A stretch of 32,000 nt of DNA from assembly GCF_000400465.1 (NCBI RefSeq), contig NW_008806281.1:150001-182000 (forward strand). Direction: 5' to 3'. Below, in pieces: positions 1,159 to 16,810 of the stretch; position 1 is the first letter of the stretch, and each line of letters starts with the position of its first letter. Source of the stretch: Wallemia ichthyophaga EXF-994 (taxonomy: Eukaryota > Fungi > Basidiomycota). The notes beneath the pieces are model-generated. The model was not told where the DNA came from. It was given only the letters and a program-made list of their open reading frames with translations, and did not search any database. A program made the position numbers and the translations under genes.

Positions 1159-2429
1159 ATGACGCTCGGATATGCAAAGTTACAGGATGGACGGATAGAC
1201 GGTGCAGATGGTGCAGGTGGTGTGGACAGCACGCATGAGCCACCGCACACGATCCACTCCAACTGGAACAAGGCTGATGCAAATCTCGAGGAAATCACGC
1301 TGGACGATCTCAGCGAGCCAGTCGAGCCAGCGCCACTGAAGCGCTCCCTGATAGCCGGATGCGGGCCACTCGGGCGCAACTACACTCCCAGCTCCATCTA
1401 CGAGTCTGCGGCCCCCGTTGAAGCCGTCAAAGTGGCATTAGACAATGGTCGGTGGCGGCTTATAAACTGTGGAAATCGAACGCTCTCTCTTACATTGCAT
1501 ACACAGGTGTGCGTGCTTTCGATAACGCCCCTCACTACGCACCCGCCGAAGCCGTTCTCGGCCGGGCGCTTAACATCCTCGAGCCATTGCACCCGAGGCA
1601 CACATACACGCTCATCACCAAAGTCGGTCATTACGGCGATGAGGTCAATTACAGTGAGGCGCGTATTCACGAATCTCTCCGCAGATCGTTTGCATATCTC
1701 AACACGGACTACCTAGATATCGTCTACCTCCACGATGTCGAGTTCGTAGCGGAGGCGATAGCTGATATCAACGAGGCTGGTCAGCCAACAAGAGTGCTCG
1801 ACAATCTCCAAAAGTACAATTTGACTGGTGAGCCGAGGATACTGGGCAAGGGCGACGAAGAGGTGCTCAACGCCCTACGGATACTCAACGGGTATAAGAA
1901 AAAAGGCAAAATACGCAATATAGGCGTTTCCGCACTACCCTTACCAACACTGCTGCGTGTTTCTAGGTTGGCTATTAGCCACCTCGGAAAAGATTCACTG
2001 CAGTATGTCATGTCGTATGCTAATCATGGCCCTCAAGCGCTCGCTCCACCCAGCTATATCCAAACCAATTTTGAAGCATTCGAGGGGCTGTTTGATGACA
2101 GTATCTCTCTCGTCACTGCTAGTCCGTTCGCTATGGGCTTGCTCACTCCTCAAGGCCCCCCAGACTGGCATCCTGCGCCAGATGGTCTCAAAGATACTGC
2201 AAAACGCACAGTGAAAGCGTTGGGCCAGGAGGCTAGCAAAGCTGCGGCGAGCTTCTCTATGCGCAAATATACAACTGTCAGCGGTTGGCAGAATGCAGAT
2301 GAGGTAAAACAGGGTCTGGAGGCGTACCATGACTCAAAAGCCAGCGAAAGTGACTTGGAGAGAAAGCTCGTTGATGCCTTCATAAAGTCTGGATGGAGTG
2401 GCTATGTTTGGAGTAGCGGAAGGGTGTAG
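1159..2429 (+). CDS. ARA2: Aldo-keto reductase, D-arabinose 1-dehydrogenase (ARA2-like)
   Basis: Two ORF-track frames joined by a GT-AG intron at 1448..1506. AKR motifs FDNAPHY, ITKVGHY, YLHDVEF and ASPFAMGLL are present; LHDVEF is typical of the Ara2 subfamily. Confidence 0.8.
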
Positions 2430-2541
2430 CTGTAGTGAATAGAATTTATAGAATACTGAGAGTGTACCTAGACAATGATATGAAATAGCGAGCTTAATTG
2501 TTTTGATGAAGTTTCTAAAACAAAACGATTGCAAAAATATT

Positions 2542-2614
2542 AGCCCCACGCGGGGCTCGAACCCGCAGCCTTGTGATTAAGAGTCACACGCTCTACCGAT
2601 TGAGCTAGCAAGGC
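2542..2614 (-). tRNA. tRNA-Lys(CTT), intronless
   Basis: Reverse complement GCCTTGCTAGCTCAATCGGTAGAGCGTGTGACTCTTAATCACAAGGCTGCGGGTTCGAGCCCCGCGTGGGGCT folds as a cloverleaf. Anticodon arm TGTGA-CTCTTAA-TCACA, TTCGA T-loop, and a T5 Pol III terminator at 2537..2533. Confidence 0.97.
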
Positions 2615-3692
2615 TGTTAATAGCGTTCTCAACAATTTACAATATAATCTTAATTTGTGCAAAAGCAAAGATGTCACAAGGCATCAAATTTTGACATTAT
2701 AGACGTCAAAATCACACAATAATAGACAAGTTCGACAAAATTTCTACTTTGATGCTTTAGTGAGTAAAAACGAGTAATAGTTGCAAATATGACGGTTATC
2801 TCATCAAAACAACAAAAAGAGGCATTCTGCAGTATCTTTGAAAGTATAAGTGCTCTTCTGTAGCTGAAATATGCTGCTTAGTGTAATAAAAGCTCTATGA
2901 GCATAGTAATAACCTTCCAATAACAGTTTGAACTCAGTCGATTTTCGAGGAGATGACATATTCAAGAGTGTTCTTAAAGTCATACAAAAATATCATTAAA
3001 GCAACACGATACTGTCTCAATGAACCCAAGACTGATTTAAAAGTTCATGATATTGATGTGTTAACGCCTCAAATACCCAAGAAAATAATGGGTACCTGTG
3101 ACGCAAAAAAATGATTGAAATTCCAAATTGCTTGTTGTATCTACCACTACTTCACTTGTAGCACTTTTAGTCACCGATCTGAATCACCTCTGCACGTGCA
3201 TCAATGATATCACGAGAGTCATAATATCAGAGTGAAGACTTAGTGATTCAAGCCATGCTAGGTTCAAGAAAAGGAAAACCTTAGATTGCTTAATTTATCA
3301 TCAAATTCTTCCTATAAACGTGTTCAATGGGTTAGGTGTTGTTTAGCGCTCTGCAATGGTTACAATGGTTTTGGCATGTCTCAGAGATAGACATTTGAAA
3401 AAGAGAAATACACACTCCTAAAACCCTGAGAGGCACAAATTCTTAAAATTGGCCTTATATTCTGTAAATTGCCGATACATGCTTTTGTACCTGAGTCGTG
3501 CAGCGAGCGATTCACAAGGCGTTTTGTGCCAAATAATTGAGCCGCACCAATTTATCACAGGTATCTCGACAGGGGGACGTAAAGCATAATAAATAAAGAA
3601 AGAACAAAAGAGTGAAACGTGAGAGTGAGTGAAGGGTATAGACAATTCTCGTAAACAGAAATATCGTTATTAAGCTCAAGTAGCAGATAAGA

Positions 3693-4757
3693 CTAACTAG
3701 CAGAATCGATCGACTGCCTCCTCTCAGAGGCTGTGATGAAACTAGCAGCAGTGGTAGCAATAGTAGTAGAGCTCTTCTTATAATTAGAAGCAGGATTATT
3801 GTAAACTAAATCAGGACTGCGGATAGGATTGAGCGGACTAGTGCCAATGTTGTAGCTACGGAGAGATTGAGTGGTGTTTGAATCGAAACTTTCTCGGCGA
3901 CTGTTAGGTGCCAGAGCTCTAGTGGAGAATTCGTCGTCATCGAGTTTGAGTGAGGAGTGCAGGCTAGATTTAGTGATAGAATTTGAGTTGTCATTGTGGT
4001 AAATTCTTCCAGCGTTTGAAGAAGCGAGAGTCATGATTGAAGCGTCGTCATTAGGGGGAGAGAGAGGACGTGGATTGTTGTGTAGTTGAGGACGTGTGTA
4101 CGTGGGAGGGGTGTTGTAAGAGATCTGGGCGTTGTGAGAGTTGTAAGAGGAGTTCGGATTAAAATGAGGAGAAGACGGAGAAGCCTGGGCGATTTGAGCG
4201 ACTTGATGAGATTCTAAAGAGGATCTATCGTGTGGATCGATGGATAGCAGAGTAGTTGGCTTAGTACTGGCTTTAGAAATAAAAGTATTCGATTCGTTGT
4301 CGTCGTCGTCGTTGTCTGGATGATCGGTGTTAAGAGTGGAATGAGAATGAGTATCTGGATCGCTGTCAATGGAGTTGGAAGTGAAGCTGATGGACTTCTT
4401 GCTATTGAGGGGTTTTAAGCTTGCGTCATCGTCTGCGCCGTTGTGTGGGCCGATTGAAGATTCTGGGTAATTTGATCGCTTGATAGTGGAGAATGAGGTG
4501 TGGTTGACGACGCCATTGAGAGTGGACCTGCGCTTAGAAGATGGCTTTGGCGTATCGTGTAGCTCGTAATCGTAAGCAAAACCGGGGGCAGGGGGAACAT
4601 TAGTGGAAGAGCGTCTACCAAGGCGTTTACTCAGCCAATTGATGATTGGCTTCCGATCTTTCTTTTTAGTGGCTGAGATTGGAGTGGTGGTGGGTGTTGT
4701 GTGTGGTTGTTGCTGTTGCTGTTGTTGTTGCTGCTCTCTCTCCTCAGAAGATCTCAT
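3693..4757 (-). CDS. Hypothetical Ser/Asn-rich protein with N-terminal polyQ
   Basis: Intronless ORF of about 354 aa from the ATG at 4757 (MRSSEEREQQQ...). Low complexity; no domain recognised with confidence. Confidence 0.75.
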   Translation of the reverse strand: MRSSEEREQQQQQQQQQPHTTPTTTPISATKKKDRKPIINWLSKRLGRRSSTNVPPAPGFAYDYELHDTPKPSSKRRSTLNGVVNHTSFSTIKRSNYPESSIGPHNGADDDASLKPLNSKKSISFTSNSIDSDPDTHSHSTLNTDHPDNDDDDNESNTFISKASTKPTTLLSIDPHDRSSLESHQVAQIAQASPSSPHFNPNSSYNSHNAQISYNTPPTYTRPQLHNNPRPLSPPNDDASIMTLASSNAGRIYHNDNSNSITKSSLHSSLKLDDDEFSTRALAPNSRRESFDSNTTQSLRSYNIGTSPLNPIRSPDLVYNNPASNYKKSSTTIATTAASFITASERRQSIDSAS

Positions 4758-5312
4758 GACTGTGAGCTGCAAACAAGTTCAAGTGACGTGAGCCATTCAA
4801 CATGAAAGATACAAGAAGGAATTTATTTAATTCCCTAAAACACCCTTTTAACCTCAATAAACATTTCCTTGCAAATCTACGTGGGTTGCTGTGAGCCTGT
4901 GTATTCTGCCCGCCGTCTCACCCACCTTACACCTCCCGCCAGTACCTTGCCTCCTCGCGTCTGTTTTGCAACTCAGCCAATTGATGATTGGCTTCCGATC
5001 TTTCTTTTTAGTGGCTGAGATTGGAGTGGTGGTGGGTGTTGTGTGTGGTTGTTGCTGTTGCTGTTGTTGTTGCTGCTCTCTCTCCTCAGAAGATCTCATG
5101 ACTGTGAGCTGCAAACAAGTTCAAGTGACGTGAGCCATTCAACATGAAAGATACAAGAAGGAATTTATTTAATTCCCTAAAACACCCTTTTAACCTCAAT
5201 AAACATTTCCTTGCAAATCTACGTGGGTTGCTGTGAGCCTGTGTATTCTGCCCGCCGTCTCACCCACCTTACACCTCCCGCCAGTACCTTGCTTCATCGC
5301 GTCTGTTTTGCA
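4629..5312. repeat. Direct tandem duplication, 2 x 342 bp (4629..4970 and 4971..5312)
   Basis: Read side by side, the copies are identical except at 4951/5293 (c/t) and 4954/5296 (c/a). Confidence 0.97.
4835..5099 (-). CDS. Putative chimeric gene created by the duplication (polyQ N-terminus fused to the C-terminal half of a RING finger), 71 aa
   Basis: ATG at 5099, in-frame junction WLS|CKTD at 4971/4970, duplicated 49-nt intron at 4925..4877, and terminal exon ICKEMFIEVKRVF* ending at 4835. Expression is unknown. Confidence 0.5.
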
Positions 5313-5477
5313 CAGGTAAGCGTGATTACAAGGTACACAACTATATTCCACTGGTTTCGTTTTGCAGATGAGGCATATAATTGGTGTGTTTGGAGTGTTT
5401 GGAGTACCTGGAGTATCTATAGTACCCTGAGTACCTCGAATATCGTTAATATTACTCGTTTTACTCGTATTGCTCAT
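5177..5477 (-). CDS. Small RING-finger protein (C3HC4_3-like), 83 aa
   Basis: CLIC-x11-CNH-x3-CKTD-x9-CK, then intron GTGGGT...CGTAG at 5267..5219, then ICKEMFIEVKRVF*. Splicing supplies the last Cys of the CxxC pair. Confidence 0.85.
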
Positions 5478-5510
5478 CGCTGTTTCTAATCTTGAACAAG
5501 AACCACCATC

Positions 5511-6112
5511 ATGACCTCAATAAACAACGCCATCCACTCAATCAAATCCCCGCTTTTAAAATCATTCCTTCTCTCTGAATCTAATTTCTGGTTTGTGGCA
5601 CAGAAATCCCAGCATCTCCTGCCGCCATCAACGACCCTCGAACAAGCGCAATCTGATCCTCGCGCTTTGAGACCTTCGCCGTTTCAATTCAGAAAGTCCA
5701 AGCTCACCGGTAAATGGCAGCCCCCGCGTTACTCGAGGAGACAGCAGGCTGACCTCATCAAGGCTGCCAGAGCTGAAGGCGTGATGCACCTACTTCCAAC
5801 TTCAGTCAAGGACGCTGTCACCGATGCTGTTTCCGTTGAGAAACCCTTTAATTGGCAGGAGAAGGCCATGTTTGATGTCCTCCCAAGGGCTCCTAGAGCC
5901 GTTGCAGAGAAGAAGTTTAAGGGTAGTCTCTGGCACAGGAAGCAGCCAGCCAGACAAGCAGCAATCCATGAAAATCTACAGAACATGTCCCAAAAGATCG
6001 ATTTCTGGAACAAGGTGCGCTGTTCTCTCTCTTTGTTCTGTCTTCTTGCTTACTCTCTACAAAGGAAAAGGAACAGCGCAAACAGAAACACACTCCGCCA
6101 CTACCTTTCTAG
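5511..6112 (+). CDS. MRPL25: Mitochondrial ribosomal protein mL59 (MRPL25)
   Basis: KWQPPRYSRRQQADLIKAA motif and KKFKGSLW. Intron 6015..6064 followed by exon EKEQRKQKHTPPLPF*, ending in the LPF C-terminus typical of the family. Confidence 0.85.
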
Positions 6113-6209
6113 ATTCATTTGTTTCACACTTTATACATTACTCTTTATCGCATTCGTTTTCTTTCCCTCCTTGCCCTCTTCTTGCTCCTCTCCTTACTCT
6201 CCATTCTCC

Positions 6210-7280
6210 ATGGCTAGACGTTTCACTGTAAAAGTTCCAGCGACTTCTGCAAATCTAGCGTGTGGCTTTGATTGCCTGGGTGCCAGTTGGGAGGGTATTG
6301 ATTTACGTCTGAGCGTCTCTCACCAACCCTACCCCGCAACGAAACACACAACGCCTACAATCACCTACACAGGCGAGGGAGCTGGCGAGGTACCTCTGGA
6401 TCCATACAAGAATCTAACGACGCGCGTGTGCATATATGTGTTAAGATGCCACGACATAGGAGAATTCCCCGACGAGTTGGACATAAAAGTGCACAACGAA
6501 ATCCCCTTTGGACGCGGTCTGGGCAGTTCCGGTGCTGCGGTGGTAGCTGGGGTCTTATTAGCGGATGCGCTGGCTGATTTGCGTATGACGCCGTCGCGCC
6601 AGCTCGATTTCGCGCTAATGGTTGAGCGTCACCCCGACAACGTAGCTGCAGCGTTGATCGGCGGGTTCGTAGGGAGCTACCTGAAAACGTTACCAGCGGG
6701 GGCGCTCGACCCATCCAGCGTGCCCATGAGCGAGGTGCTACCCGAATACCCGCGCGACGCCAGCAAGGACTGGGGAAGCAAGCCTCCCGTCCCCCCGCAC
6801 GAGATCGGCCACTGGCTTCGTTATGGCTGGGCAGAGCAGATCAAGGCGCTTGTAGTCATCCCTCAATTTGAATTATCTACCGCCAAGGCTAGGGGGTGTC
6901 TACCGGAACTGTATGAGAGGGGAGATGTCGTTTTCAATTTACAGCGCCTCGCTGTACTTACTACAGCTCTCTCCATTAATCCACCGGACCCACATCTTAT
7001 TTGGGAAGCTATGCAGGACCGTCTCCACCAGCCGTACCGCGCTGAGTTGATACCAGGTCTACCGGAAATCACTAGATCTCTCACACCTTCAACCCACCCA
7101 GGTCTGCTTGGAATCTGCCTCTCAGGCGCTGGTCCAACTATACTCGCCCTGCACACACATAACGATGACGCCATTGCGCAGGGCATCTGCAGCATCTTTG
7201 CAAAGAACGGCGTGCAGTGCAGACTCGAAGTGAAGGGGATATCGCTTACGGGTTCTACGGTGAATTGGGAGTTAAAATAA
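6210..7280 (+). CDS. THR1: Homoserine kinase (GHMP family)
   Basis: VKVPATSANL..GFDCLG, IPFGRGLGSSGAAVVAG, ERHPDNVAAALIGGF, MQDRLHQPYRAELIPG and CLSGAGPTIL motifs. Confidence 0.95.
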   Translation: MARRFTVKVPATSANLACGFDCLGASWEGIDLRLSVSHQPYPATKHTTPTITYTGEGAGEVPLDPYKNLTTRVCIYVLRCHDIGEFPDELDIKVHNEIPFGRGLGSSGAAVVAGVLLADALADLRMTPSRQLDFALMVERHPDNVAAALIGGFVGSYLKTLPAGALDPSSVPMSEVLPEYPRDASKDWGSKPPVPPHEIGHWLRYGWAEQIKALVVIPQFELSTAKARGCLPELYERGDVVFNLQRLAVLTTALSINPPDPHLIWEAMQDRLHQPYRAELIPGLPEITRSLTPSTHPGLLGICLSGAGPTILALHTHNDDAIAQGICSIFAKNGVQCRLEVKGISLTGSTVNWELK

Positions 7281-8048: not shown

Positions 8049-8110
8049 TGTGGCTTGTGGCTTGTGGCTTGTGGTATTTAGCATTTAGCAATTAGCAATT
8101 AGCATTTAGT
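8049..8110. repeat. Two abutting heptamer minisatellites, (TGTGGCT)x~4 and (AWTTAGC)x5
   Basis: Read directly between the convergent MAK3 and MED4 stop codons. Confidence 0.85.
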
Positions 8111-8167
8111 AATCCATAGTCATCATTAGCATTAGAAATAGCCTCAGCCTCAGCCTCAGCATTGAAA

Positions 8168-15400: not shown

Positions 15401-16810
15401 TCAACTCTTGCCGAAGAAGCTCGAAATAGAGCGCAGCGTGGACGGTTTATCGAATCCGCCGTCGTTAGAGGGGGCGTGTGAGTGGGCATGTGAGTTTAAT
15501 TGTGAGTGTGACTGTTGCGTTAGCGTTGGCGTCGTACTATCAGCATTCCTTGCGCTGCTCTGCTGTCTACCAAACAACCACGATGCATTTGTTTTGTGAG
15601 CAGTATCTGTAGGCGTAGGCACATCCTCATCTGTAGGCAGCGGCGGTAATTTCAACCCACTCGGCTTCTCCTCGCCGGAACTATCCATGAACTCACGCAA
15701 CGCCCGTAGCGCATTCTCACTCGATAACTTACCCTCCTTGATTACATCCACCTCCCGCCTCAGCCTCTGTATCTCGTTGGAAAGATTAGCGTTCTCCATT
15801 TGCACATTAGTCATATCCATCACCTGCGACGATCTGTTAGACGATGCGTTGCTCGACGGTTGTTGTGGGGCTGGTTGAGGGTTGAGGTGTAAGTCTTTGA
15901 GGGATTTTGTTGTGTTGCCATTACCATTGCCATTACCACTGATGCTTGCATTATCCGCTGATACGGACGACAATCTCTTGTGTGACTTGATCGAAGCTCT
16001 CTTCTGTGGTAAAAGGGTGTAAGAGGTATTTCTTTGTATTATAACATATCGACTCACCGAAAGATTGGCTGGCTCGCTTAGTATAAACGACGACCGCTTC
16101 GACTCCGTCTCCTGTCTCCTCCTACTCTTATCCTGCTCTTGCTGCTGCTGCAGTTTCATGACGCCATTCCTGCTCTCCTCAACCCGCGTACGCAATTGTA
16201 CTATTATCTCCTCTGCATCTACTCTTTGCTTCTTTTCTATTTCCAACTCCTGTGCAATTAATTCGCAATCTTCTTTGTATTTCTCGTTACTTGTCATTAG
16301 AGCTACGTTGTCCTCACGCACTTTAGCCAATTCTGAAAGTATCTTTTCTAGGTCGTGCTCTGTGTGCTCTGCTTTCTCTGCGTGCTCTATATCTCTCTCA
16401 GATTCAGGCGGCGTGCGCAGTCCTAGCACTGACATGCGTTTATCGAACTCGTCCACTGTCTTTGCTGGGGGTATGTCCTCCGCATCTTGCTCATTCTCAT
16501 TCCCATTCTCGTTCTCACCCACACCTCCGGTGGTATGATCCTCCATCTTTATGAAATCTTCTTCGGCGTCGTCCCATTTATCGAGCGATTTCGTTTGCGA
16601 TAAGGATAACGAAGGTGATAGCGGTGGTTCTAGGGTGTGTTGATGCTCCTGCTTGTGCTGGTGCGTCAAGGATTGGGTATCATTGGAATCCAGCGTATCC
16701 TGTGTATCCAGCGTATCCAGCGTATCCTGCGTATCCTTCGTATCCTGCATATTCTGAGTATCATTCTCATCAAATCCATACTTCTCCTCTCTTTCTCCCG
16801 ATTCTTGCAT
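15401..16810 (-). CDS. Hypothetical coiled-coil protein with DTQ/DTL repeats
   Basis: Long ORF with two predicted coiled-coil stretches. Likely in-frame intron at 16057..16004; first ATG at 16810. Confidence 0.75.
   Translation of the reverse strand: MQESGEREEKYGFDENDTQNMQDTKDTQDTLDTLDTQDTLDSNDTQSLTHQHKQEHQHTLEPPLSPSLSLSQTKSLDKWDDAEEDFIKMEDHTTGGVGENENGNENEQDAEDIPPAKTVDEFDKRMSVLGLRTPPESERDIEHAEKAEHTEHDLEKILSELAKVREDNVALMTSNEKYKEDCELIAQELEIEKKQRVDAEEIIVQLRTRVEESRNGVMKLQQQQEQDKSRRRQETESKRSSFILSEPANLSVSRYVIIQRNTSYTLLPQKRASIKSHKRLSSVSADNASISGNGNGNGNTTKSLKDLHLNPQPAPQQPSSNASSNRSSQVMDMTNVQMENANLSNEIQRLRREVDVIKEGKLSSENALRALREFMDSSGEEKPSGLKLPPLPTDEDVPTPTDTAHKTNASWLFGRQQSSARNADSTTPTLTQQSHSQLNSHAHSHAPSNDGGFDKPSTLRSISSFFGKS

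Follow-up and report, generated by a model that had tools for sequence, protein, structure and literature searches.

Chimeric genes are known to arise commonly from tandem duplications that ignore gene boundaries, and 76 formed in this way were found in 15 lines of D. yakuba (2017, PLoS Genet 13:e1006795, PMC5460883; see also PMC4069613). In these duplications, the 5′ end of a downstream gene is joined to the 3′ end of an upstream gene on the same strand, while both parent genes stay whole. The architecture of the locus studied here is identical. The two cases differ in that the D. yakuba duplications were documented by population sequence data and RNA-seq, whereas the present one is known from a single assembly. 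The locus also resembles a second described system. False duplications, which arise from sequencing errors or incorrect gap filling, create false chimeric genes (2022, Genome Biol 23:205, PMC9516828). There, as here, the copy adjoins the original, is missing from independent assemblies of the species and carries variants seen nowhere else, and the annotation pipeline has made an extra chimeric gene. On the other hand, the published cases were confirmed by read depth and read pairs and most have an assembly gap, whereas the present copy has no N bases beside it and is known from the assembly alone. The heterozygosity route that is common among the published cases does not apply, since the genome is reported to be haploid. 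The third point of reference is the RING finger family zf-C3HC4_3 (PF13920). The 83-residue parent protein clears the curated cut-off of this family, while the chimera starts at the fifth zinc ligand and has no Pfam match. Is the duplication a newborn gene of the fungus or a product of the assembly? The second answer is the more probable one on the evidence set out below.

The window, that is, the whole stretch of 32,000 nucleotides analysed, comes from Wallemia ichthyophaga EXF-994. Window position p corresponds to position 150000+p of scaffold KE007231.1, and the two are identical over the 8757 bases compared. A sequence-only reading had described a 342-bp tandem duplication at 4629-5312, which was confirmed both by Tandem Repeats Finder (period 342, 2.0 copies, 99% matches, 0 indels, score 1354) and by a base-by-base, gap-free comparison, in which the two head-to-tail copies (Table 1) differ at two positions (4951 C versus 5293 T; 4954 C versus 5296 A). 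A repeat search of the window also returned an exact 300-nt repeat pair with a spacing of 342. An exact repeat of 342 nt cannot have originated by chance. On the minus strand, the unit runs from codon 56 of the RING gene (CKTDAMKQ...) through the 49-nt intron, exon 2 and the stop codon into a spacer of 77 nt, and ends at codon 43 of the polyQ gene (...PIINWLS). The composition given in the earlier reading, with the 3′ end of the RING gene, the intergenic spacer and the 5′ end of the polyQ gene on one strand, is thus correct. ATG codons of the polyQ gene consequently occur at both 5099 and 4757, and the RING intron recurs at 4925..4877. The repeat extends 0 nt beyond the unit on either side, which means that there is no microhomology at the junction, as had been claimed; the wider context in the record is ...GTCTGTTTTGCA/ACTCAGCCAAT..., where the slash marks the junction. 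None of the 15-, 17- or 21-mers of the unit recurs elsewhere in the window, and the window contains 0 N bases, including none between the copies.

Table 1. Features of the duplicated locus and of related loci. Positions are those of the window unless a contig or another locus (L) is named; a slash within a sequence marks the breakpoint.
Feature	Position	Strand	Remarks
Intact polyQ/Ser-rich gene, 354 aa	3693..4757	-	No Pfam family; the breakpoint cuts the conserved N-terminal motif KKKDRKPIINWLS/KRLGRRSSTNVPPAPG
Copy 1 of the 342-bp unit	4629..4970	-	Adjoins the intact polyQ gene; private substitutions 4951 (C) and 4954 (C)
(CAA/CAG)9 tract encoding the polyQ run	4707..4733	-	Second copy at 5049..5075; sole low-complexity stretch within the unit
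Chimeric ORF J056_004457, 71 aa	4835..5099	-	Exon 1 5099..4926 (43 polyQ + 15 RING codons); intron 4925..4877; exon 2 4876..4835
Duplication junction TTTTGCA/ACTCAGCC	4970..4971	.	Blunt, 0 nt microhomology; codon boundary in both parent genes
Copy 2 of the 342-bp unit	4971..5312	-	Sequence state of every other strain (T 5293, A 5296)
Parent RING-finger gene, 83 aa	5177..5477	-	Exon 1 5477..5268; 49-nt intron 5267..5219; exon 2 5218..5177 including stop
Mitochondrial ribosomal protein mL59 gene, divergent neighbour	5511..6112	+	ATG 33 nt from the RING ATG
RING orthologues of two other Wallemia species	L008 ~4589-5000; L009 ~1530-1924		Intron position conserved
Fused model TIB65047.1, 420 aa	SPOQ01000007.1, L014 2501-3943		
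Fused model TIA83336.1, 378 aa	SPNX01000007.1, L015 2501-3763		

The junction creates an ORF that is intact and in frame, with canonical GT..AG splice sites, 129 nt of coding sequence ahead of the junction, both breakpoints in phase 0 and a spliced length of 216 nt. The 71-aa translation is exactly as the earlier reading wrote it, and the coding sequences of both parent genes are whole, as it also stated. When the spliced RING protein was used in a protein search, the single match was a 71-aa protein identical to the chimera, namely the hypothetical protein J056_004457 of W. ichthyophaga EXF-994 (EOR01136.1, XP_009267927.1, UniProt R9AM13). This chimeric protein was found on one contig only, the KE007231.1 scaffold of GCA_000400465.1. 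According to the 2013 genome paper, the source of the gene model was GeneMark-ES, an ab initio predictor; thus, the annotation is no evidence of transcription. The expression tables of the 2013 supplement contain no trace of J056_004457, whether by locus tag, accession or protein sequence; they carry GME identifiers not mapped to the gene, and RNA reads falling on the duplicated unit would map to multiple places anyway.

It was also claimed that the chimera has received its own copies of the upstream region, the intron and the stop codon. This holds for the intron and the stop codon but not for the upstream region, since the chimera sits in the original context, with the duplicated copy placed ahead of the intact polyQ gene. 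The 5′ half of the chimera is in copy 2, where it is preceded by the upstream sequence native to the polyQ gene. For the intact polyQ gene starting at 4757, the native upstream sequence ends at the junction, after only 213 nt. In a real duplication, it would therefore be the parent polyQ gene, not the chimera, that has been displaced.

The RING-side breakpoint falls exactly at the fifth zinc ligand. The chimera retains four of the eight ligands (C5, D6, C7 and C8; CKTD...CKIC), and the description "half a RING finger" is accurate. The retained ligands amount to one pair per zinc site, which leaves neither site complete, and Pfam gives no match for the chimera even at E<=1. Judging from its predicted sequence, the chimera cannot work as a RING. 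The parent protein, on the other hand, has the ligand pattern C-x2-C ... C-x-H-x3-C-x2-D ... C-x2-C and matches PF13920 over residues 34-75 with 31.1 bits against a cut-off of 27 (E = 2.1e-7). The Asp at its sixth ligand position is conserved.

A RING ORF lies between the mL59 gene and the orthologue of the polyQ gene also in W. hederae and in a third Wallemia species, whose locus was taken from the Logan assembly of run SRR25399871. In both species the intron is 51 nt long and interrupts the same codon as in W. ichthyophaga. The exons are conserved across the three species while the intron is not, and synonymous codon differences exceed nonsynonymous ones in all three pairwise comparisons (22 versus 6 between W. 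hederae and the third species). The proteins of the two other species are shorter, at 67 and 64 aa. The RING was annotated as a gene of its own in no locus, genome or protein set examined. Both parent genes are real, and the RING gene is conserved yet unannotated in the genomes examined.

The neighbourhood is crowded. The divergent start codons of the RING and mL59 genes are 33 nt apart (5478-5510), and the RING stop codon lies 77 nt from the polyQ ATG. The genome is very compact, and promoters and UTRs here must overlap neighbouring genes. On the plus strand, an uninterrupted ORF of 589 codons (5511-7280) passes through the mL59 and homoserine kinase genes. The EXF-994 reference splits this ORF into proteins of 183 aa (with a 50-nt intron) and 356 aa, while later strain annotations fuse the two into a single protein of 582-589 aa with both Pfam domains. 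As for the polyQ gene, its 354-aa product is rich in Ser and Thr. The Q9 run in its 5′ part (4629-4757) is specific to W. ichthyophaga and absent from the two other Wallemia species. Just after the run stands the motif KKKDRKPIINWLSKRLGRRSSTNVPPAPG, which is nearly invariant in the three species; the breakpoint follows NWLS.

The distribution of the duplication was assessed in 12 other W. ichthyophaga loci among the matches listed, none of which is EXF-994 itself. They comprise 11 GenBank assemblies (SPOR, SPOG, SPOB, SPOD, SPOL, SPOI, SPOJ, SPNZ, SPOQ, SPNX and SPOE) and one Logan contig (SRR25393947). All 12 have a single unit and lack the junction 21-mer, which is confined to the loci from the EXF-994 record. 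The distance from the RING ATG to the polyQ ATG is 378 nt in every one of them, against 378 and 720 nt in the reference, and the spacing is that of a single copy in W. hederae and the third species too. The presence/absence comparison across strains proposed along with the gene-birth claim therefore gave 0 of 12, with none of the loci coming from EXF-994.

Could a duplication shared by the whole species have been collapsed in the other assemblies? The strain assemblies were built with IDBA-Hybrid, guided by the EXF-994 reference itself. A repeat of this kind would form a loop in the graph and break the contigs, yet eight of the 11 GenBank strain contigs are 169-256 kb long and pass through the locus unbroken, and the 41-kb Logan contig is unbranched with a single copy. 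This explanation was rejected. A collapsed repeat would be unlikely there if Logan contigs are assembled at k=31. The polyQ haplotype differs in the only Logan contigs of the species, indicating that their source is another strain.

The reference differs from other strains in small ways as well. Three substitutions (2967, 5571 and 7560) are private to it in a comparison with five strains over 8757 bp, and these may be real private SNPs or base errors of the reference. The closest strains show a SNP density of 0.13% against the EXF-994 reference. Elsewhere in the window, strains differ at 8049-8113, where two adjacent 7-bp tandem arrays (TGTGGCT and ATTTAGC) vary by 7-bp and 14-bp indels and by several substitutions around 8068-8084. 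A tRNA-Lys(CTT) gene (2541-2615, minus strand) is followed by a block at 2619-2628 with strain haplotypes CAAG versus TCGC or TCTC. Within a long minus-strand ORF, positions 16688-16762 hold 8.3 copies of a 9-bp tandem repeat (ATCCTGCGT; 81% matches).

The two mismatches between the copies lie 17 and 20 nt from the junction, about 3-4 nt apart, in the extra copy (copy 1) only. At the variable positions, all strains, W. hederae and the third species have ATGAAG (Met-Lys), while AGGAGG (Arg-Arg) occurs only in copy 1; the mismatches thus replace an M-K pair that is conserved across three species. Under random placement, the probability that both fall in that 20-nt stretch is P = 0.0034. A duplication found in the reference alone must date from the branch private to the reference. 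The rate on this branch, 3 changes per 8757 bp, predicts 0.23 changes in 684 bp, and the probability of two or more is P = 0.024. Later independent mutations were therefore rejected as the source of the mismatches, both by position and by the private-branch rate. Both probabilities being low, the mismatches arose together with the junction, either as repair mutations or as assembly errors. A templated origin was rejected as well; no 10- to 14-mer with both mismatches occurs elsewhere in the window on either strand, and the window has no other near-match of the terminal 20-mer. Each mismatch copies its 5′ neighbour on the plus strand (GC[T>C] and TC[A>C]). Phasing errors near the 3′ ends of Illumina reads typically look like this, and polymerase misalignment also yields such substitutions.

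The duplication is private to the assembly, and its mismatches are tied to a junction that is blunt. Taken together, it is probable that the second copy is a false tandem duplication introduced by the EXF-994 reference assembly and not DNA of the fungus. According to the 2013 genome paper, the reference was sequenced on a HiSeq 2000 with 500-bp and 2-kb libraries and assembled by SOAPdenovo 1.04 with K=21, to a coverage of >270x and 101 contigs in 82 scaffolds. The quality filter removed only reads with at least 40 bases of Q2 or below, and long poor read tails were thus kept. The steps inside the assembler may be inferred as follows. The true EXF-994 locus would have a single-copy RING gene, the 77-nt spacer and the polyQ gene, as in the other strains. 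The K=21 de Bruijn assembly may have broken in or near the locus, with the (CAA/CAG)9 tract as a candidate site, and the scaffolder may have overestimated the gap. Read-by-read gap filling would then have extended the left contig rightwards on the plus strand into sequence already present in the right contig, and the contigs would have been abutted. If the final ~20 nt of the extension were an uncorrected low-quality read tail, this would explain both the position of the mismatches 17 and 20 nt before the junction and the copying of the preceding plus-strand base. GeneMark-ES would finally have read the resulting in-frame ORF as a gene.

Several observations agree with an assembly error. The duplication is private to one short-read K=21 assembly of 2013 in which poor read tails were retained. 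The mismatches stand where a rightward gap-filling extension would have ended, and their error pattern fits reads running in that direction. The copy-1 states occur in no other strain and replace the conserved M-K pair, and the junction has zero microhomology. There are also points against it. False duplications usually flank a gap (PMC9516828), whereas no N separates the copies here. The output of a de Bruijn assembler is normally limited to k-mers present in the reads, and at >270x an unsupported junction with two uncorrected errors is not the default outcome. A gap-closing step is absent from the description in the 2013 paper, and gaps closed by GapCloser were ~99.8-99.96% identical in the benchmark of the Sealer paper. 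A literature search found nothing specific on SOAPdenovo gap closing producing such duplications, which leaves the assembler mechanism an inference. A repeated k-mer that would force a K=21 contig break was sought within the window, but the unit's 15-, 17- and 21-mers do not turn up elsewhere in it. Finally, the other samples are not EXF-994, and their single copy would be accounted for just as well by a real duplication private to this strain.

A real, strain-specific duplication, whether inert or expressed, is less probable than an assembly error. In its plainer form, judged unlikely, the duplication is private to the EXF-994 lineage, and the chimeric ORF, which has only half a RING and half of the conserved N-terminal motif, would exist in the DNA as a by-product, neutral or mildly harmful. 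Two breaks (4628/4629 and 5312/5313), on sister chromatids or during replication, would have been joined bluntly, and error-prone fill-in would have left the two substitutions near the joint. The sequence is seamless, with no N and >270x coverage, and the reference lineage is distinct by its three private SNPs and the 0.13% density, leaving time for a private event. The boundary-ignoring architecture is that of a common route, and polymerase misalignment could also give the neighbour-copying substitutions. Against this, the duplication is absent from all 12 other samples, and two point mutations are needed besides the rearrangement (P = 0.024 if independent). Fungal tandem duplications of this size that arise spontaneously usually rely on microhomology, which the junction lacks, and the assembly method is prone to just such an error. 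A literature search found no long-read assembly of EXF-994.

In the full form of the gene-birth claim, the chimera is a real and very young gene, which would be transcribed from the polyQ promoter, spliced at 4925..4877 and translated into a 71-aa protein with an existing or emerging function. In favour of this, the ORF is intact and in frame with GT..AG splice sites, its 5′ side lies in the upstream context native to the polyQ gene, and GeneMark-ES predicted it. Every point against a private duplication counts here too. In addition, the annotation is ab initio and the tables with GME identifiers cannot be mapped to the gene; the protein has no Pfam match and only four of the eight zinc ligands, one pair from each zinc site; the substitutions alter residues conserved in three species; and no other strain carries it. 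The full claim is hardly credible. It is likewise very improbable that a real duplication arose on the short branch private to this lineage, through blunt joining of ends and mutagenic synthesis beside the joint, and that its chimera is transcribed from the native upstream region of the polyQ gene and spliced. A real young gene born by non-homologous repair is thus the less likely reading of a duplication that is present in the reference only, is absent from 12 loci and two other Wallemia species, has junction-bound mismatches and is supported by an ab initio model.

Gene birth claimed from a single short-read assembly has to be proved at the level of the reads. A real copy would be an ordinary case of a well-known way in which chimeric genes form, attractive mainly for its recency and the known empty site. 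If the copy is false, which is the preferred reading, a database error has already spread, with the 71-aa J056_004457 present in NCBI, nr and UniRef collections. The EXF-994 proteome served as annotation evidence for 21 later strains, and in two single-copy strains MAKER models join fragments of the RING gene by splicing to the polyQ gene (Table 1). The chimeric EXF-994 protein, used as annotation evidence, likely caused these fused models. The RefSeq and UniProt entry of the chimera is probably an error, and this error has apparently been propagated into the fused models of two other strains.
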